Shown piece by piece: positions 12,388-64,000 of a stretch of DNA of 64,000 nucleotides; position 1 is the stretch's first letter; every line of letters starts with the position of its first letter. Both the position numbers and the translations under genes were made by a program. The notes below the pieces were generated by a model, which saw only the letters and a program-made list of their open reading frames with translations, had not been told where the DNA came from and did no database searches. Source of the DNA: Macrostomum lignano (taxonomy: Eukaryota); the NCBI GenBank assembly GCA_002269645.1, contig NIVC01000440.1, positions 186,001-250,000 of the forward strand, in the 5' to 3' direction.

Positions 12388-21393
<9,006 letters not shown>

Positions 21394-49300: not shown

Positions 49301-51413
49301 AAAATCCCAATTCTCTAATCTAAAATCGCAGTTCTCCAATCTGAAATCCGAATTCCTTAACCTGAAATCGCAATTCTCCAATCTGAAATCCCAATTCCAT
49401 AATCTGAAATCCCAGTTCCCCAATCTAAAATCCCTATTCTCTAATCTAAAATCGCAATTCTCCAATCTGAAATCCCAATTCCCTAATCTGAAATCCCAAT
49501 TCAACCATTTTAAATCTATTTTCCAACCTGAAATCCCAATTTCTAAATCTGAAATCCCAATTCTCTAAGCTAGAATCCCAAATTCTCCAACCTGAAATCC
49601 CAATTCCCCAATCTGAAATCCTAATTCCCCAGTCTGAAATCCCGATTCCACATATTGAATCCTCAACCCTCCCACTTGAAATCCCGACTCCCCAAATTGA
49701 AATCCCAATCCCACAATCCGAAATTCGAAGTCCCAGTTACCAGTTCAGTCTCGCCATCCTTATCCGTGCCGAGCTCCATCGGCCACAGCTTGATCTGTCT
49801 GTCCGCCCCGGCCGTGGCGACCAGCGCCTCCTCCGGGTCGAAGCTGATAGCGGACCAGACCGCCGCCTCGTGGCCGCCAGCGAACACGGCCACGCAGCGG
49901 TTGCGACGCCACAGTCGAGCGGTTCGGTCCCAGCTGGCGCTGAGCAGCTGGCGGCCGCTGGATCCGTGCGGGCCGGCGCAGCTCAGGCCGCAGACGTTCG
50001 CTTCGTGACCTTCGAGACGAGCGACTGGCTCGGGCGAGTCCAGGGTGAAGGCGAATATTACCTGGTTGAGAGGGGGGCATTTGGCGATAGGATACAATGG
50101 GATTTTATCCAAAAAGTTATCAAGAAAGGGATAGAAAGTTATATATATATATTGAGAATAAGAGGACTTTATGGGGAAATATGAAGGGGAGAATAGGGAT
50201 TCATGGGGAACATGGTGGGAAGTAGCGGGATTCATGGGGAATATGGTGGGGAGAATGGGGATTTATGGGGAAATATGATGGGGAGAATGGGGATTTATGG
50301 GAAATATGATGGGGAGAATGGGGATTCATGGGGAATATGGTGGGGAGAAGGGGATTCATGGGGAAATATGATGGGGAGAATGGGGATTCATGGGGAATAT
50401 GGTGGGGAGAAGGGGGAATTCATGGGGAATATGGTGGGGAGAATGGGGATTTATGGGGAAATATGATGGGGAGAATGGGGATTCATGGGGAATATGGTGG
50501 GGAGAATGGGGATTTATGGGGAAATATGATGGGGAGAATGGGGATTCATGGGGAATATGGTGGGGAGAATGGGGATTCATGGGGAATATGGTGGGGAGAA
50601 TGGGGATTTATGGGGAAATATGATGGGGAGAATGGGGATTCATGGGGAATATGGTGGGGAGAATGGGGATTTATGGGGAAATATGGTGGGGAGAATGGGG
50701 ATTTACGGGGAAATATGGTGGGGAGAATGGGGATTTATGGGGAAATATGGTGGGGAGAATGGGGATTTATGGGGAAATATGATGGGGAGACTGGGGATTC
50801 ATGGGGAATATGATGGGGAGAATGGGGATTTATGGGGAAATATGATGGGGAGAATGGGGATTCATGGGGAATATGGTGGGGAGAATGGGGATTCATGGGG
50901 AAATATGGTGGGAGAATGGGGATTTATGGGGAAATATGATGGGGAGAATGGGGATTCATGGGGAATATGATGGGGAGAATGGGGATTTATGGGGAAATAT
51001 GATGGGGAGAATGGGGATTCATGGGAAAAAATAATAATAAGGAATTAAGAATGCGACGAAAACACAGGGAATAATGAGTAGTACTCTCCCATCTCCCAGC
51101 TACCCACCTTGTCCATTCCAGCGGTGTACAGCAGGCCACCAGGGCACCAGTCGCACGGGTCCATCCAAGCAACGGCATTCACGTAGCCGGCATGCGAGCA
51201 CAGGCCCAGGCACTCCGTGTAACCAACCGCTCCATCTTCAGCAGCCAGATCCGGACTCCAAACTCGAGCTGTTCGATCGCGACTGGCGCTGGCGATACAG
51301 GCAGCCCCAGACAGGGCAGGGGAGGTCACCGAGCACAGGGCTTTCACGTCTTTCTCGTGGCCTAGAAGGCTGCAGCTCAATCTGTAGGGTCGGAACGTGC
51401 TGGCCGATGCCAT
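43315..51413 (-). CDS. PLAA: Phospholipase A2-activating protein (Doa1/Ufd3), join(51413..51108,50061..49741,49014..48634,47990..47758,46615..46133,44923..44443,43620..43315), 836 aa
   Basis: WD40 propeller ([57 protein letters not shown]); PFU domain ([39 protein letters not shown]); PUL repeats; all junctions GT-AG, phase-consistent, 2511 nt. Confidence 0.95.
43660..44400. repeat. 20-bp then 24-bp minisatellites rich in TGA(C/G)TCA, last PLAA intron
   Basis: TGACTGAATGACTCAGTGAA and TGACTGAATGACTCAAACAGTGCA units. Confidence 0.93.
45108..46050. repeat. 31-33-bp minisatellite in a PLAA intron
   Basis: CCCATCCCATATCCCACACCAATTAGAGAAT. Confidence 0.93.
46690..47650. repeat. G-rich ~24-26-bp minisatellite in a PLAA intron
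   Basis: GGGGGCGATTCTCAGGGTGGATTG variants. Confidence 0.9.
49070..49720. repeat. 21-bp minisatellite in a PLAA intron
   Basis: CTGAAATCCCAATTCCCTAAT. Confidence 0.9.
50165..51025. repeat. ~31-bp G-rich minisatellite in PLAA intron 1
   Basis: GGGGAGAATGGGGATTCATGGGGAATATGGT variants. Confidence 0.9.
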
Positions 51414-51519
51414 GGGTACTTCTGTCTGGGATTGGCTTGGTGCTTGGATTGTCCTGGCTTTGCCTTGGCAACCGCGGCTTTCAGCTGCAGTGGAAAAAAT
51501 AATCTTGTATTAGAATTTT

Positions 51520-52320
51520 TTGGGAGATCTGGTCGCTGGGGTGAGGTCTGGTAGCTGGGGTGAGATCTAGTAGCTTCAGGTGGGATCTGGTAGCTGGGGT
51601 GAGGTCTGGTAGCTTTAGGTGAGATCTGGTAGCTGGAGTGAGGTCTGGTAGCTTTAGGTGAGATCTGGTAGCTGGGGTAAGATCTGGTAGCTGGGGTGGG
51701 ATCTGGTAGCTGGGGTGAGGTCTGGTAGCTGGGGTGAGATCTGGTAGCTGGGGTGGGATCTGGTAGCTGGGGTGAGGTCTGGTAGCTTTAGGTGAGATCT
51801 GGTAGCTGGGGTGAGGTCTGGTAGCTTTAGGTGAGATCTGGTAGCTGGGGTAAGATCTGGTAGCTTCAAGTGGGATCTGGTAGCTTGAAGTGAGAATCTG
51901 GTAGCTTAGATGAGATCTGGTAGTTGGGGTGAGGTCTGGTAGCTTTAGGTGAGATCTGGTAGCTGGGGTGAGATCTGGTAGCTTGGGTGAGATCTTCTGG
52001 TAGCTTGGGTGAGATCTGGTAGCTGGGGTAAGATCTGGTAGCTTCAAGTGGGATCTGGTAGCTTGAAGTGAGAATCTGGTAGCTTAGATGAGATCTGGTA
52101 GTTGGGGTGAGGTCTGGTAGCTTTAGGTGAGATCTGGTAGCTGGGGTGAGATCTGGTAGCTTGGGTGAGATCTTCTGGTAGCTTGGGTGAGATCTGGTAG
52201 CTTGAAGTGAGAATTTGGTAGCTGGGGTGAGATCTGGTAGCTGGGGTGAGATCTGGTAGCTGGGGTGAGATCTGGTAGCTTGGGTGAGATCTGGTAGCTT
52301 GGGTGAGATCTGGTAGCTTG
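51520..52320. repeat. ~19-20-bp minisatellite between the F-box locus and PLAA
   Basis: GAGATCTGGTAGCTGGGGT variants. Confidence 0.9.
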
Positions 52321-52701
52321 AGCCTATAATCTGGCATACAAAATGACAGGATAAAAATGAATTTAAATAGAGAGAAACAGCAACAATTATTAATATATGA
52401 ATATATTAGTTTAACAGTTTCAATTTAAATATTAGGGCAGTAAATAAAAAGGAGTAAAAAATTAAGCATCCGAACTACACGCAAATGTGACAGATTTATT
52501 TATGATTGAAAGCAAAATCAGAAAAATCTTTCTCTTTGAAGCCGATACTTAATTATATCACGAATATGCCAATGATCAATGGCTACTTAAGGCAATAAGT
52601 AGTTAAAAAATAGATTTGGAAATATAACAGAACTGTGTAATTAAATCAGGTTTAAAAACTGAGTGCTTTCTTTTATTTGTATCTTTCACATTATTGGAGA
52701 T

Positions 52702-54116
52702 TCACAAAAACATTACTTTAACAGGTCTGGAAGCTCTTTGAATAAAGCACGGCTTGTTAAACTTGCACTTCTTCAAGTGCTTTGACTGCCAGGCTCCCGG
52801 GGGCAGGCGCCCTGGAAGGAAATGGTTCGAAATAGGGATATTAGTGTTATAATTGTTATTTAATAAGAGTATATTTCCTTACCCTCACCTGTCTCTCTAC
52901 CCTCACCTGTCTCTCTACCCTCACCTGTCTCTACCCTCACCTGTCTCTCTACCCTCACCTGTCTCTCTACCCTCACCTGTCTCTCTACCCTCACCTGTCT
53001 CTCTACCCTCACCTGTCTCTCTAACCTCACCTGTCTCTACCCTCACCTGTCTCTCTACCCTCACCTGTCTCTACCCTCACCTGTCTCTCTACCCTCACCC
53101 GTCTCTCTACCCTCACCTGTCTCTCTACCCTCACCCGTCTCTCTACCCTCACCTGTCTCTCTACCCTCACCTGTCTCTCTACCCTCACCTGTCTCTACCC
53201 TCACCGGTCTCTCTACCCTCACCTGTCTTTACCCTCACCCGTCTCTCTACCCTCACCTGTCTCTCTAACCTCACCTGTCTCTACCCTCACCCGTCTCTCT
53301 ACCCTCACCTGTCTCTACCCTCACCTGTCTCTCTACCCTCACCTGTCTCTCTACCCTCACCTGTCTCTCTACCCTCACCCGTCTCTCTACCCTCACCTGT
53401 CTCTCTACCCTCACCCGTCTCTCTACCCTCACCTGTCTCTCTACCCTCACCCGTCTCTCTACCCTCACCTGTCTCTCTACCCTCACCTGTCTCTCTACCC
53501 TCACCTGTCTCTCTACCCTCACCTGTCTCTACCCTCACCTGTCTCTCTACCCTCACCTGTCTTTACCCTCACCCGTCTCTCTACCCTCACCTGTCTCTCT
53601 AACCTCACCTGTCTCTACCCTCACCCGTTTCTCTACCCTCACCTGTCTCTACCCTCACCTGTCTCTCTACCCTCACCTGTCTCTCTACCCTCACCTGTCT
53701 CTAACCTCACCTGTCTCTCTACCCTCACCTGTCTCTCTACCCTCACCCGTCTCTCTACCCTCACCCGTCTCTCTACCCTCACCTGTCTCTCTACCCTCAC
53801 CTGTCTCTCTACCCTCACCTGTCTCTCTACCTGGCCTACTTTCACCGGCATTTGTATCTTCTTCAATAAATATTGAATAAGCATTAAAATTGACTTGCTC
53901 ATTCACACCTTTGCTTTCATCAGTGCTCTCGCTGACGCAATTCTCGTTGCCATAGCAACCAGCAGAGTCAACAGTGACTAGGCCATCGTTGCCAGCACAA
54001 TAATCGGCATATCTGGCCCCGCAGCCAAGGTAGGCCAAAGGACAAGCATTCTCTGCCTCCATCAGTCCAAGGTCAGTAACCTGCTGGGCATGCCAACAGC
54101 ACAAAAATGCTATTTG
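52702..54116 (-). CDS. Diverged F-box-less duplicate of the 3' part of the FBXO30/40-like gene, join(54116..53909,52811..52702); alternative 3' module or pseudogene
   Basis: WHAQQ...CPLAYLGC matches WHAAQH...CPLAYLGC; LPPGAWQSKHLKKCKFN..RPVKV matches [22 protein letters not shown]; phase-1 donor/acceptor match, TGA at 52702, AATAAA (- strand) at 52672-52677. Confidence 0.6.
52870..53830. repeat. 16/18-bp minisatellite reading CAGGTGAGGGTAGAGAGA on the - (sense) strand
   Basis: Direct reading, ~50 units. Confidence 0.95.
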
Positions 54117-54827
54117 CTATTTGAATGATAATTTATTGTACGCTTGAATAAACAACTGTCACGCCAATTATACAACGCTACAGTTGCAGTCTTTGTACAC
54201 GCGTGCATTTAGGCTCAGGAATAGGGGATAGCTAGAGAGGATAGGGAGAGGAAAGAGGGAGAGAGTAGACAAGGAGACAGGGCGAGAAGTAGACAAGAAG
54301 AGTAGACAGGGAGAGAGTAGATATGGCGAGAGTAGACAGGGAGAGAGTAGATATGGCGAGAGTAGATATGGCGAGAGTAGACAGGGAGAGTAGAGAGGGA
54401 GAGAAGTAGACAGCAAGAGTAGACAAGGAGAGAGTAGAGTAGAGAGGGAGAGAGTAGACACGGAGAGAGTAGAGTAGAGAGGGGAGAGTAGACAGAGAGA
54501 GTAAACAGAGAGAGAGTAGACACGAAAAAAAGTAGCCTGGGAGAAATATTGGACAGTGAAGATAGTAGGTAAATGGAAGAGGTAGACCGGTAGGTAACAG
54601 ACAAACGAGCTGGCTAAGAAAAGAGATCAGGAAGTGAAAAACTCTATCAGCGCATATAACGGTAAATGGGTTTAAAAACGCAAACGATAAGCATGCAACA
54701 TGAGGCTCTGATCTGAGGCTTACAGTTAGCTTAAATCTCCACAAAATACTTTACAAGCCCAGCAAAGAGGAAAAATGGTAACTAAGGAGGAAACCAAAAG
54801 CAGACAGAAACTCCATTACATTACAGC

Positions 54828-55210
54828 CCTTCATTCAGCACTACTGTCTCCCTTCATTCAGCACTACTGTCTCCCTTCATTCAGCACTACTGTCTCCCTT
54901 CATTCAGCACCAATGTCTCCCTTCATTCAGCACCAATGTCTCCCTTCATTCAGCACTGCTGTCTCATTTCATTTAGCACTACAGCCCCCTCACTCAGCAC
55001 AGGCAGCACTGCTATCCCCCTCACTCAGCACAGGCAGCACTGCTATCCCCCTCACTCAGCACAGGCAGCACTGCCATCCCCCTCACTCAGCACAGGCAGC
55101 ACTGCCATCCCCCTCACTCAGCACAGGCAGCACTGCCATCCCCCTCACTCAGCACAGGCAGCACTGCCATCCCCCTCACTCAGCACAGGCAGCACTGCTA
55201 TCCCCCTTCA
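54828..55210. repeat. 23-bp and 31-bp minisatellites; the 31-bp unit overlaps the last codons and stop of the F-box gene
   Basis: CAGCACAGGCAGCACTGCCATCCCCCTCACT. Confidence 0.9.
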
Positions 55211-55746
55211 GCGGAGGCAGCACTCGCACTCGCACAGGAGCGGTTTGAGTCTCGGATCGCTGGTTGAACTCGCAGCTGGCCAGATGCTTCGACATCCAAG
55301 CGGCAGCTGGCAGACCCCCTGGCCGGTGATGGTCGAATGCGGCTTGGCCGGAGGCGAACCAGCGGGCTCTGCTTGGTTTGGACACCTGCCGCCAACCGGT
55401 GATACCGGTGGGGCTCTGGTTAGCCAGCAGCTCCCAGCCAAGTTCAACGCAACAGCTTCGGCCGCGGCGCCAACGATCGTCATCAAGACGGTGGCGCATC
55501 GCCCGGCAAGTTGAGCGAAGGCACAACAGGGCGTGGCTGTCCAGGTAGGACAGAATGCGATCGATCAGCTCGTCTGGTAGGGTCATGAGGCCTGGGCCTG
55601 GGTGGAAGTTGATAGGCGCAGAGATAGCTGTGTCTCACTTTGCCACCGGCCTGCATGCTGCCTGCCTGCCTGCCTGCCTGCCTGTCTGTCTGCCTGCCTG
55701 TCTTAGTGTCTGTCTGCCTGTCTGTCTGCCTGTCTGTCTGCCTGTC

Positions 55747-55782
<36 letters not shown>

Positions 55783-55817
55783 GCCTGTCTGTCTGTCTGT
55801 CTGTCTGTCTGTCTGCC

Positions 55818-55854
<37 letters not shown>

Positions 55855-56100
55855 GCCTGTCTGTCTGTCTGTCTGTCTGTCTATCTGCCTGTCTGTCTGT
55901 CTGTCTGTCTGCCTGTCTGTCTGTCTGCCTGTCTTAGTGTCTTAGTGTCTGTCTGCCTGTCGTCTGTCTGTCTGTCTGTCTGTCTGCCTGTCTGTCTGTC
56001 TGTCTGTCTGCCTGTCTGTCTGTCTGCCTGTCTGTCTGTCTGTCTGTCTGTCTGCCTGTCTGTCTGTCTGCCTGTCTGTCTGTCTGTCTGTTGCCTGTCA

Positions 56101-56135
<35 letters not shown>

Positions 56136-56165
56136 GCCTGTCGTCTGTCTGTCTGTTGCCTGTCA

Positions 56166-56200
<35 letters not shown>

Positions 56201-56207
56201 GCCTGTC

Positions 56208-56251
<44 letters not shown>

Positions 56252-56329
56252 TAGTGTCTTAGTGTCTGTCTGCCTGTCGTCTGTCTGTCTGTCTGTCTGT
56301 CTGCCTGTCTGTCTGTCTGTTGCCTGTCA

Positions 56330-56364
<35 letters not shown>

Positions 56365-56413
56365 GCCTGTCTGTCTGTCTGTTGCCTGTCATCTGTCTGT
56401 CTGTCTGCCTGTC

Positions 56414-56449
<36 letters not shown>

Positions 56450-58308
56450 GCCTGTCTTAGTGTCTGTCTGTCTATGTATGTCTGTCTGGATACATATCCC
56501 AATCAATCGCCCCGAAATCGTCTCCAACCCGTACCCCACTCACTACAGTAGCCATCATCATCGCTAGAATCGTCTCCAACACCGCTAGCCTTCTCATCGC
56601 CAAGACAACCAACAGAGGTATCTCGGCGAGCGAAAGCGTGCCCGAACAGATCGAACACGAGGCCTTTATCGCCTGTGAAGCGGGCGGTGCAGCCCAGGTA
56701 GGCCAGCGGACAGACTGTCTCAGCCGCGAGGGTGTCGCTGCCGGACAAGTTGGGATACAGGCGGAGGTGCTGCGCCGCGTGCCAAGAGAATTCGTCGCGA
56801 CGAACAACCTGTGCGGCAGAGAGCGGAGGAGATTAGAATAACCGCATTACTAATGGTTACCTTAAAAAGATGATAAAGATCTTTTGATAAACTTTATAAA
56901 ACACATCAACTAAAGATAATAAAAGGATTGACTTAGTAACAAAGTACAGAATCCTGCAGATTCTTGAGTACGGACACCTGTAAGATACTTGAGTACAGAC
57001 ACCTGTAAGATACTTGAGTACAGACACCTGTAAGATACATGAGTACAGACACCTGTAAGATACTTGAGTACAGACACCTGTAAGATACTTGAGTAAAGAC
57101 ACCTGTAAGATACTAGAGTACAGACACCTGTAAGATACTTGAGTACAGACACCTGTAAGATACTTGAGTACAGACACCTGTAAGATACTTGAGTACAGAC
57201 ACCTGTAAGATACTAGAGTACAGACACCTGTAAGATACATGAGTACAGACACCTGTAAGATACTTGAGTACAGACACCTGTAAGATACTTGAGTACAGAC
57301 ACCTGTAAGATACTTGGGTACAGACACCTGTAAGATACTTGAGTACAGACACCTGTAAGATACATGAGTACAGACACCTGTAAGATACTAGAGTACAGAC
57401 ACCTGTAAGATACTTGAGTACAGACACCTGTAAGATACTTGAGTACAGACACCTGTAAGATACTTGAGTACAGACACCTGTAAGATACTAGAGTAGACAC
57501 CTGTAAGATACTTGAGTACAGACCCCTGTAAGATACTTAAGCAGACAGCACAGAACCCGCAGCTCACCTGAGAGCACACCCGAGCACCGCGCGGACGCCA
57601 ATCGTGAGCCCTCGGACAGCCGTCGCCAGGATTAACAAACGCCAAGTGATGATTGACAAGCTGCGGCAGCGGAGGCTGGTGTTGATGAAGATTTGGCGAC
57701 TCGGCAAGGCAGCTCAGAATCCGAGCGGACAGGCCGCTGCTTGGCAGTCGATGAGGCTGCTCGGCCGATTTCTCCCCAGCCTCTTCTTTATCATCATCAC
57801 GATCGCCGAGTCCTTGACTACGGTAGCCTAGCAACTGGTCTAGCGGCTCACTGCCAGCCCGATGACCTTCTCCATAATTGTTGTTATTAGCAACAGACTT
57901 GGCAGACTTACTGTTACTGTAATTATTATTACTAGACGCCGGCCGACGCTCTTTAAGCATCAGCGACAGGCAGAGGGCGCTGTCGAAATTCGATCGACAA
58001 AATCCGTCCCCATCCGGACAGGCGACGCTCATGGATGACGTCACGAACTCCGGGAACAGCATCAGCGGGCACTGGACAATGGAGGCCGGACAGACAGGCA
58101 GGTGACTGGCCAACTGCTGACGAGGCAATCGCCTGTCGCAACCGTAAGCAACATTGATGCAGGGGACCAGCTGCCTGGGACAAATCAACAGGTGATCCGG
58201 CCGTTTGCAGGCGTGGAAACAGGCACCGCAGTCGCAGTGAATCATGTCGCAGCCGAGGTCGCAGCTGCGCCTGTGACAGCGGCAGCAATGATTGGCGCAG
58301 ATGTTGTC
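55176..58308 (-). CDS. FBXO30: FBXO30/FBXO40-like F-box protein with N-terminal TRAF-type zinc finger, join(58308..57568,56808..56544,55597..55176), ~475 aa without initiator Met
   Basis: [10 protein letters not shown]...[31 protein letters not shown]...[12 protein letters not shown]; RRDEFSWH...CPLAYLGC; F-box [17 protein letters not shown]; C-terminal HLASCEFN. Phases 0 and 1 match. Cannot separate FBXO30 from FBXO40; no genomic ATG seen at the 5' end. Confidence 0.88.
55665..56480. repeat. (CTGT)n degenerate microsatellite in an F-box gene intron
   Basis: Direct reading. Confidence 0.95.
56965..57540. repeat. 25-bp minisatellite in F-box gene intron 1
   Basis: GAGTACAGACACCTGTAAGATACTT; sense strand reads ...TCTTACAG|GTGTCT... 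Confidence 0.95.
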
Positions 58309-58431
58309 CTGAAAATAGGTTCAGATATCACGTGGTATGTAGCAGTTGGGCTTTTGTTTTTGTTGGAAATGCAATTCGCTAATTAGCAATGAAAGTGGGA
58401 GCCGAATATTTGATTGCTGACAATTTATGCT

Positions 58432-58555
58432 AAGGTTGGGGTTCAGGTTGGGTTTGGGGTTCAGGTTAGGGTTGGGGTTAGGGTTCAGGTTAGGGTTGGG
58501 GTTCAGTTTAGGGTTAGGGTTCAGGTTAGGATTGGGGTTCAGGTAAGGGTTGGGG
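58432..58555 (+). repeat. Interstitial degenerate telomere-like hexamer array (TTAGGG/TTGGGG/TTCAGG)
   Basis: Direct reading; same sequence type flanks the LINE at 59062-59077 and 62894-62925. Confidence 0.85.
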
Positions 58556-58565
58556 CACCTTCAGG

Positions 58566-58876
58566 CATACATGCACAACCTCTAAAATTCGGTCGGCCAT
58601 GCGACTTTGTTTTAACAAAAATGCGACGTAGTTTTTAGCCAAAATGCGACGTAGTTTTTGGCCAAAAATGCGACTTACATGTAAAAAACCCTAACGCAAA
58701 ATTAACTTTGGGTAAACGGCAGGAGTAACTATGACTGTCTTATTAAGTCAAAATGCCTCGTCAGCTACTTAGTACTACTTCGGTATTTTTTGGGTGGGCA
58801 TTTTTGCGACTTCCTTGGTTGGCCGCCAAATCGGTCGGCCGGATCGGCCGACTCGGCCGACTGTTGGGCATGTATG
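58566..58876. mobile_element. MITE copy A (CATACATGCACAAC..GTTGGGCATGTATG, 8-bp TSD CCTTCAGG) carrying a 28S rDNA fragment at 58710-58773
   Basis: TIRs match 13/14; TSD at 58558-58565 and 58877-58884; subterminal AAAATGCGAC repeats. Confidence 0.85.
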
Positions 58877-58896
58877 CCTTCAGGTTGGGGTTCAGG

Positions 58897-59061
58897 CATA
58901 CATGTGCAACCTTGGGAATCACCCAGCCATTTCTATTGGCAAAACACACATGTAAGTCACTATTGGTTCAGGTTAAGAAAGGGTAAACTCTAATAGCATT
59001 TTACATGTATGTGTTGCACATAGAAATGGCCAGGTGAATCCCTAGGTTGCAGCCAAGCATG
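58897..59061. mobile_element. Short related MITE/hairpin element with ~50-bp internal inverted repeats
   Basis: Starts CATACATGTGCAACC, ends GGTTGCAGCCAAGCATG; flanks GGTTCAGG/GGTTAAGG (7/8); 50-bp arms match 42/50. Confidence 0.65.
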
Positions 59062-59077
59062 GGTTAAGGTTAGGGTT

Positions 59078-62893
<3,816 letters not shown>

Positions 62894-62970
62894 TAAGGTT
62901 AGGGTTGGGGTTAGAGGGTTCAGGTCAAGATTGGTAGTCAATTTATAGCATGTTGATATTTGTTATTAAT

Positions 62971-63231
62971 CATACATGCGCAACCCCCCTGATTTACACT
63001 GGCCATGCGATTTACTTTTTGACCAAAAATGCGACTTACCTGTCAAAAAACCCAAAATTTTGGGTAAACGACAGGAGTAACTATAACTGTCTTATAAGGG
63101 CTAAATGCCTCGTCATCTAACTAGTGCTACGTCTGTATTCTTTGGGGTGGGCATTTTTGCGACTTACCCCTGGTCCACCAAAATTTACAGTGGCCAGATC
63201 GGCCAGGTCGGCCAGCAGTTGCGCATGCATG
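62971..63231. mobile_element. MITE copy B (CATACATGCGCAAC..GTTGCGCATGCATG, 8-bp TSD TTATTAAT) carrying a 28S rDNA fragment at 63062-63125
   Basis: TIRs match 13/14; TSD at 62963-62970 and 63232-63239; same internal layout as copy A. Confidence 0.88.
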
Positions 63232-64000
63232 TTATTAATAGTAAAATGCCTACTAAGTTTTTGTGTTATAGTTTATATAAAATATTAAACAACTTATACT
63301 TAAACTCAAAAAACAAAATTTGCTATAGTTAAGGACTTTAATGAGGGTCCCATGATTAGCCAATGCCCATATGTATATAGAAGGCAAATTTCAATAAAAA
63401 CAAAAAAGTTAATATATAGTCATATAGACTAGGTTTTTTGGAAATGATTAGGCCCTAGCTTTGTAATGCAATTATATAAATAAAATGAAATTTGAAATTA
63501 GAAATACAAAAAAATAAAGAAAGTTAGGCTAATTTGTCATAAGAAAAACTTTAAAAATATTTATTTAGCTTTCTGCCTTTCTTTAAAATGATAATAAATA
63601 AGGGTTAGACAAGATCTTGATCTTGGTTATCAAGATCTTAGAACTTTAATAAATGGCTATTAAAAAAACTTATCTTTACAAAAATAGATGCTTTCGATTA
63701 TTTTATTAAGCCTATGCTGCCTATTTTTAAAATTAAGAAATGGTAATTTCCAGCATTAAAAGCCAACAATTGTTAGGCCCTAGGCCTATTGTGACTGTTT
63801 ACAGTGATTATATAAATAGTAAGACAGTTGTTTTAATAGTCAATATATAAAACAAATCTATATACAGTATACTAATTTTGTGCTGTTTGTCAGTCAGTCA
63901 GCCAGTCAGTTGGTCTGTCATTGATTTTTTTAGAACTATCTCTCTGGTCTGGCCAATTTTTTTTTAAATCAGCTTTTAAAAAATTGTATTTTTTAATTTT

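Follow-up and report, generated by a model that had tools for sequence, protein, structure and literature searches.

A spliced-leader AUG as the probable start codon of an FBXO30/FBXO40-type F-box gene in the flatworm Macrostomum lignano

The supply of an initiator codon by a spliced leader (SL) is a known flatworm mechanism. The SL AUG was shown to act as initiator in Schistosoma in 2006 (Cheng et al., 2006, as relayed in PMC9851317 and PMC12582326), and by the account given in PMC9851317 the AUG of the Schistosoma mansoni SL is in frame in 28% of cases and more than 40 cDNAs depend on it. In the mRNAs described in that work (Cheng, Cohen, Ndegwa and Davis, 2006, J Biol Chem 281:733), as far as later papers relate it, an SL with a 3'-terminal AUG is spliced in frame onto an exon lacking a start codon, and the AUG of the SL encodes the initiator Met. 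AUG forms the 3' end of every flatworm SL reported. Macrostomum lignano uses a single SL of 35 nt, CGGTCTCTTACTGCGAAGACTCAATTTATTGCATG, with ATG at its 3' end (PMC8629364), the terminal sequence being published as ...TTTATTGCATG (PMC8629364; PMC10468722); ATG likewise closes the SLs of M. cliftonense and M. hystrix and is noted by the authors as a likely start codon (PMC10468722). SL trans-splicing affects 30-39% of M. lignano genes, among which conserved genes are over-represented (PMC8629364; PMC5730564), and the top motif at the SL acceptors is [T/C]TNCAG (PMC8629364). A further related phenomenon is that of the slORFs of nematodes, Oikopleura and trypanosomes (slORFfinder, PMC9851317), in which the SL rather than the gene likewise gives the start codon.

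The gene considered here lies in a stretch of 64,000 nt of contig NIVC01000440.1, hereafter the window, which was compared with three loci of the M. lignano assembly GCA_002269645.1 (Mlig_3_7), namely L001, L002 (on NIVC01000440.1) and L003, the contigs of the two paralogous loci being NIVC01001855.1 and NIVC01001338.1. L002 is collinear with the window and 100% identical to it over all three exons, which places the gene in a flatworm, as the original prediction had presupposed; the SL of this species ends in ATG, in keeping with the accompanying statement that flatworm SL RNAs end in AUG. It is likely, at a probability of about 85%, that this F-box gene is SL trans-spliced at 58309|58308 and that the SL AUG is the sole start that gives a complete 476-aa protein. 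The ATG of the Macrostomum SL has already been noted in the literature and, since the mechanism has been known from Cheng et al. (2006) onward, the locus does not represent a new kind of system. It is a new, well-supported example of an SL-AUG start together with a database correction, and its more novel part is technical: a probable imprint of the SL in the reference assembly. Compared with the S. mansoni mRNAs, as these are related in later papers, M. lignano is a free-living macrostomid and not a trematode, the recipient gene is FBXO30-like, and the junction is deduced from annotation and an assembly footprint instead of from cDNA. Unlike the slORFs, which mostly begin with near-cognate NUG codons and are often alternative ORFs, the M. 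lignano gene would have its main, conserved ORF restored by a canonical AUG.

The gene model was obtained by mapping the GenBank protein onto the window and comprises three exons, all with canonical GT-AG borders, and 475 codons without the added Met. The features that bear on its start are the following:

58324..64000, minus strand: outron and upstream region, dropped if the gene is trans-spliced (satellite, repeat element, LINE, AT-rich stretch)
58321..58323, minus strand: in-frame TGA of the outron
58309..58320, minus strand: acceptor and pyrimidine tract, the proposed trans-splice site with its junction at 58309|58308; TTTCAG fits [T/C]TNCAG
57568..58308, minus strand: coding exon 1, 247 codons, DNICANHCC...VCSQ, donor CAG|gtgagc, 100% identical to L002
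58066..58293, minus strand: TRAF-like zinc finger, Pfam PF15965, whose first ligands H7-C8-x2-C11 (58290-58276) lie 5' of the first ATG
58243..58245, minus strand: first genomic in-frame ATG, codon 22, the start in the UniProt/WormBase ML2 models
56544..56808, minus strand: coding exon 2, ...CPLAYLGC...DDDGYC, acceptor cag|GTT, donor A|gtgagt
55176..55597, minus strand: coding exon 3, which holds the F-box (~55583-55464) and closes with the TGA stop (55178-55176)

On the minus strand, the pyrimidine tract and acceptor (58309..58320) read acctattttcAG, with the AG at 58310-58309, and exon 1 opens at 58308 in phase 0, directly after TTTCAG; the exon-side sequence is GACAACATCTGC, and the codons across the junction are TGA ACC TAT TTT CAG|GAC AAC ATC TGC GCC AAT CAT TGC TGC CGC TGT. 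The TGA at 58323-58321, five codons 5' of exon 1, shuts the frame upstream, and ATG is absent from this stop through codon 21, the first in-frame one being codon 22 at 58245-58243. An ATG placed before 58308 opens a frame that continues across the three exons to the stop at 55178-55176 and encodes 476 aa. With AUG at the 3' end of the 35-nt SL and an exon that opens in phase 0, the AUG of an SL joined at 58308 falls into the frame of the main ORF, and no stop intervenes.

Judged by its predicted protein, the gene is an FBXO30/FBXO40-type F-box gene of M. lignano. Residues 6-81 of exon 1 align with positions 2-85 of the 93-position zf-TRAF_2 profile (PF15965; E=7e-19, 68.6 bits, cut-off 27), and this domain scores 65.7 bits in the full-length protein. 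F-box-like (32.9 bits, cut-off 24.3), F-box (27.5 bits, cut-off 20.5) and, barely, F-box_4 (32.2 bits, cut-off 32) all exceed their Pfam cut-offs, and the protein has the RRDEF...CPLAYLGC motif, as do homologues. The original prediction had described an F-box gene whose first coding exon follows a strong acceptor in phase 0 and whose first ATG, at 58245, lies inside the zinc finger; each of these points is confirmed, the last by the protein begun at Met22, which matches zf-TRAF_2 from profile position 26 only. With the FBXO30/FBXO40 (MUSA1-type) proteins the M. lignano protein has in common the N-terminal zf-TRAF_2 with an H-C-x2-C that starts within ~8 residues of Met, the central RRDEF...CPLAYxGC motif and the C-terminal F-box/F-box_4; it is much shorter than they are (476 aa versus some 600-790 aa in the named homologues and the longest ones compared) and has a low-complexity linker.

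Of the homologues that have a name, the closest carry the annotation F-box only protein 30-like or 40-like. When residues 1-120 of the exon were searched exhaustively without a profile, two proteins proved near-identical, and their 90% cluster has six members, all from M. lignano, none of which begins with MDNIC. Identity of the zinc finger to homologues outside Macrostomum is 32-56%, and the nearest of these (P0125) comes from a Tara Oceans marine contig, which proved uninformative as a clue to the SL. A word-indexed protein search with exon 1 and exact look-ups of the window ORFs gave no match, and the gene IDs were not found in the paper texts and supplements searched.

The conservation of the N-terminus bears directly on where translation begins. 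Among 145 homologues that start with Met, 127 have an [HC]CxxC motif near the N-terminus; its leading residue is commonest at position 7, 8 or 11 in these 127, and 3-20 residues precede HCxxC. In exon 1 the motif is H7-C8-C9-R10-C11, and a single added Met would bring the His to residue 8, one of the modes. Codons 1-21, which are without ATG, thus encode the conserved H-C-x2-C of zf-TRAF_2 (codons 7-11) and must therefore be translated, whereas a start at Met22 would remove this ligand set.

The GenBank models of the three copies (PAA82949.1, PAA63329.1 and PAA69239.1) are all 5'-partial and have no upstream exon. The mRNA and CDS of PAA63329.1 (L001) start exactly at the junction, with GAC and DNICANH...; the exact-junction evidence comes from this paralogue because in L003 and in the window's own copy the models start 9 and 12 nt downstream of the acceptor, respectively. 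The GenBank models are RNA-seq-based and come from the TBONE pipeline, in which transcripts are cut wherever SL-trimmed reads form a peak (PMC5730564); a 5'-partial model that starts at GAC is what TBONE yields on cutting at an SL-read peak. The ML2-based UniProt entries A0A1I8IGX7, A0A1I8JRH5, A0A1I8IGE3 and A0A1I8FDM1 (P0273-P0275 and P0122) start at Met22 and have a truncated zinc finger, and one such model, 789 aa long, fuses the F-box gene to PLAA and is riddled with frameshifts. Over the CDS of 1,428 nt the window copy differs from L001 by ~4 codons and a 2-nt gap and from L003 by 17 codons, and SNPs at codons 26 and 28 serve to tell the copies apart; synonymous versus non-synonymous differences among the copies stand at 3:1 and 9:8, counts too few for judging selection. 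The copies have 98-99.7% identity, and reads map to more than one of them. A Met supplied by the SL would mend both the 'partial' GenBank entries and the UniProt entries begun at Met22, and other M. lignano models that are 5'-partial probably need the same start correction.

The 5.7 kb upstream of the acceptor are made up of satellite, repeat element and LINE. A TTAGGG-like satellite (58434-58555) is followed by the repeat element, the LINE (59077-63230, plus strand, ~4.15 kb) is antisense to the F-box gene, and an AT-rich stretch (63230-64000) fills the rest of the window, outside which the divergent DPCD gene follows. The LINE is missing from both paralogous loci (L001 and L003) and is therefore a recent, copy-specific insertion. 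A scan of the upstream DNA for mini-exons of the form ATG...(phase 0)|GTRAG gave 5 candidates, all in repeats, versus 3.3 +/- 2.0 in shuffled sequence, and looser ATG...|GT combinations number 99. The view of the original prediction that no ATG-bearing exon precedes the gene is borne out by this chance-level result and by the models of the three copies. The next gene upstream is DPCD in each of the three loci; it lies on the other strand at a distance of 2.3-6.5 kb, the entire gap being 2.3-3.2 kb in the paralogous loci, and none of the three has a same-strand upstream gene within about 1 kb (repeat-adjusted). Given the strand and distance of DPCD, the F-box gene is not a downstream member of an operon; at most, it is possibly the first gene of a unit formed with PLAA.

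A footprint of the SL is seen at the junction itself in the paralogous loci. The four-base block before GAC is GCAT in L001 and L003 and TTCA in the window (ccTATTGCATG|GAC versus ccTATTTTCAG|GAC), and the TATTGCATG that abuts GAC in both paralogues is exactly the last 9 nt of the SL:

L001:9992-10000 and L003:9983-9991 (Mlig_3_7 assembly): SL 3' end TATTGCATG replacing the acceptor TATTTTCAG

In an alignment of 200 nt around the junction, the three loci differ by this 4-nt block and 2 SNPs and are otherwise identical. Four adjacent, specific substitutions at the junction of copies with near-identical CDS are thus not ordinary divergence. Mlig_3_7 was polished by Pilon with Illumina DNA reads and STAR-mapped RNA-seq reads (PMC5730564), and because of this polishing the block is read as an imprint of the SL-to-exon junction. 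Reads that start within the last few SL bases mismatch the genome at exactly the four block positions, and the simplest reading is that SL-junction RNA-seq reads probably overwrote TTCA with GCAT in two copies. Consistent with an imprint, the GenBank models of L001 and L003 leave out the ATG of the block and remain partial, and in ML2, an independent assembly, the models of each of the three allele types have Met22 as their start. There is also a precedent, in that the 'SL RNA' first reported from ML2 maps to the 5' end of the trans-spliced Mlig013257.g1 (PMC8629364). Since L001 and L003 also have two nearby SNPs in common, the block could go back to one inherited event rather than to two independent imprints. 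The block presupposes an SL-GACAAC junction RNA either way, as an artefact and as a real change templated by RNA. The joining of the SL at this acceptor hence rests on the start of the L001 model at the junction and on the SL suffix next to GAC in L001 and L003; the window copy itself would by extension be trans-spliced, with translation starting at the SL AUG. The original prediction of a trans-spliced gene that depends on the SL for its start codon thereby gains support from partial models in three copies and from an SL 3' end fused to GAC in two.

Other explanations of the missing start codon place it elsewhere in the genome. A cis-spliced exon located beyond the LINE or the window could give the ATG and zero or few codons, in which case 58309 would be an ordinary intron acceptor. 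Cis and trans acceptors are indistinguishable from sequence alone, and in parasitic flatworms acceptor sites are extensively common to both modes (PMC12582326); moreover, a few extra codons fit the range of residues that homologues have ahead of HCxxC, and the 99 looser ATG...|GT combinations would provide candidates. Nevertheless, such an exon is very improbable: candidate mini-exons with a GTRAG donor are no more frequent than expected by chance and are confined to repeats, the RNA-seq-guided models of three copies are flagged 5'-partial with no upstream exon, the paralogues have merely 2.3-3.2 kb between the gene and DPCD, and the SL 9-mer abuts GAC in two loci. Translation from the internal ATG at 58245, with the 21 preceding codons as 5' UTR, is the least probable of all the readings considered, even though it uses the first genomic ATG, is adopted by the four ML2-based models and yields a protein that keeps the zf-TRAF_2 match from profile position 26 on. 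The codons it leaves untranslated encode the H-C-x2-C present in 127 of the 145 homologues and correspond to profile positions 2-25, and the frame opens precisely at the acceptor. In addition, if the SL is added, its AUG lies upstream and in frame, so that a scanning ribosome would meet it before Met22.

Two further explanations take the ATTGCATG of the paralogues as real DNA. In one of them it is a genuine genomic start; the window copy would be a variant that has lost it and a duplicate that is silent or in decay. ATG-GAC is present in two of the three copies of the assembly, the LINE lies upstream of the window copy alone, and the state common to L001 and L003 would be ancestral on the coding-sequence tree. 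This account would need four adjacent substitutions by which an SL suffix became a [T/C]TNCAG acceptor without mismatch, precisely at the junction, while the CDS differs at only ~4 codons plus a 2-nt gap (L001) or 17 codons (L003). Also against it, the window copy has an intact 475-codon ORF and canonical splice sites, the 5'-partial GenBank models of L001 and L003 leave that ATG out, the ML2 models begin at Met22 for every one of the three allele types, as would be expected of an assembly with no ATG further upstream, and RNA-seq polishing of the assembly is documented (PMC5730564). The chance of this account is slim and falls between those of a cis-spliced exon and of a Met22 start. The other explanation, an unlikely one, is that the gene took up the SL 3' end, AUG included, as a copy of a trans-spliced mRNA. 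RNA-templated repair or conversion would then have removed the acceptor and made the copies SL-independent, and these recent duplicates would display both states of a transition from SL dependence to SL independence.

Under the preferred reading, SL trans-splicing of a gene without a start codon of its own, transcription from the region common to the gene and DPCD would yield the pre-mRNA, its outron would be removed up to 58309 together with the copy-specific LINE, and the SL would be joined at 58308. The mature mRNA would read ...UUAUUGCAUG|GAC AAC AUC UGC..., with the SL-exon junction ...TTTATTGCATG|GACAACATCTGCGCC, and the SL AUG, 32 nt from the cap and with G at +4, would open the 476-aa protein. 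The window copy, with its 4.15-kb LINE upstream, may be poorly expressed. The gene is a clear candidate for SL-AUG dependence in a flatworm that is capable of transgenesis. The block in the paralogues suggests, in turn, that RNA-seq polishing may have written SL bases into Mlig_3_7 at trans-splice acceptors. If general, such imprints would create false genomic ATGs and erase AG acceptors, skewing acceptor-motif statistics and start-codon calls, which matters for the mining of acceptor motifs and for transgenes designed from Mlig_3_7.

Matches to the SL elsewhere in the window were rejected as candidates. The window has no SL RNA gene: the sole near-match to the SL 3' end, with 1 mismatch at 62938-62952, falls within a repeat element, is no better than chance and lacks support from Rfam; matches of 7-8 nt to the SL suffix at 12819, 19213, 29531, 38183, 37872 and 54692 are followed by no ORF and are attributed to chance.

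The PLAA gene, downstream on the minus strand, has its own ATG at 51413, and its annotated 5' end is also at an acceptor (51482-51495). In L001 and L002 the GenBank CDS of PLAA is 5'-partial and starts 2 nt past ttccactgcag|CT, with the exon running from 51484; the corresponding acceptor sites are at L001:16320-16340, L002:16800-16820 and L003:16985-17005. An SL AUG joined there would be out of frame and would form a 37-codon uORF overlapping the PLAA ATG. The L003 site reads ccattgATG|CTC and is possibly a second, imperfect SL imprint. The best UniRef match of PLAA is 63% identical, this entry being a divergent or error-laden ML2 model. The two genes lie on the same strand, separated by 3.7 kb that are mostly tandem repeat, and might be one transcription unit. 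Between the stop of the F-box gene and PLAA, an ORF at 53694-54116 (minus strand) repeats the CPLAYLGC motif of exon 2; UniProt A0A1I8IGE3 uses it as a 3' exon, and it may be an alternative exon or the remnant of a partial duplication.

Repeats also dominate the remaining DNA around the gene. The LINE is a non-LTR retrotransposon with an intact ORF of 933 aa (60003-62804; RVT_1 and RNase_H) and one frameshift, near 59470, in its endonuclease region. It is flanked by two direct copies of one repeat family (58644-58805 and 63005-63157), 81-84% identical and each preceded by TTAGGG-like satellite, one of which falls within the segment missing from the paralogues. Introns and intergenic DNA are largely tandem repeats (56943-57538, 55658-56488 and 50171-54522): intron 1 holds 24 units of a 25-mer, intron 2 ~830 bp of (CTGT)n, and the intergenic DNA satellites of 18-39 nt.
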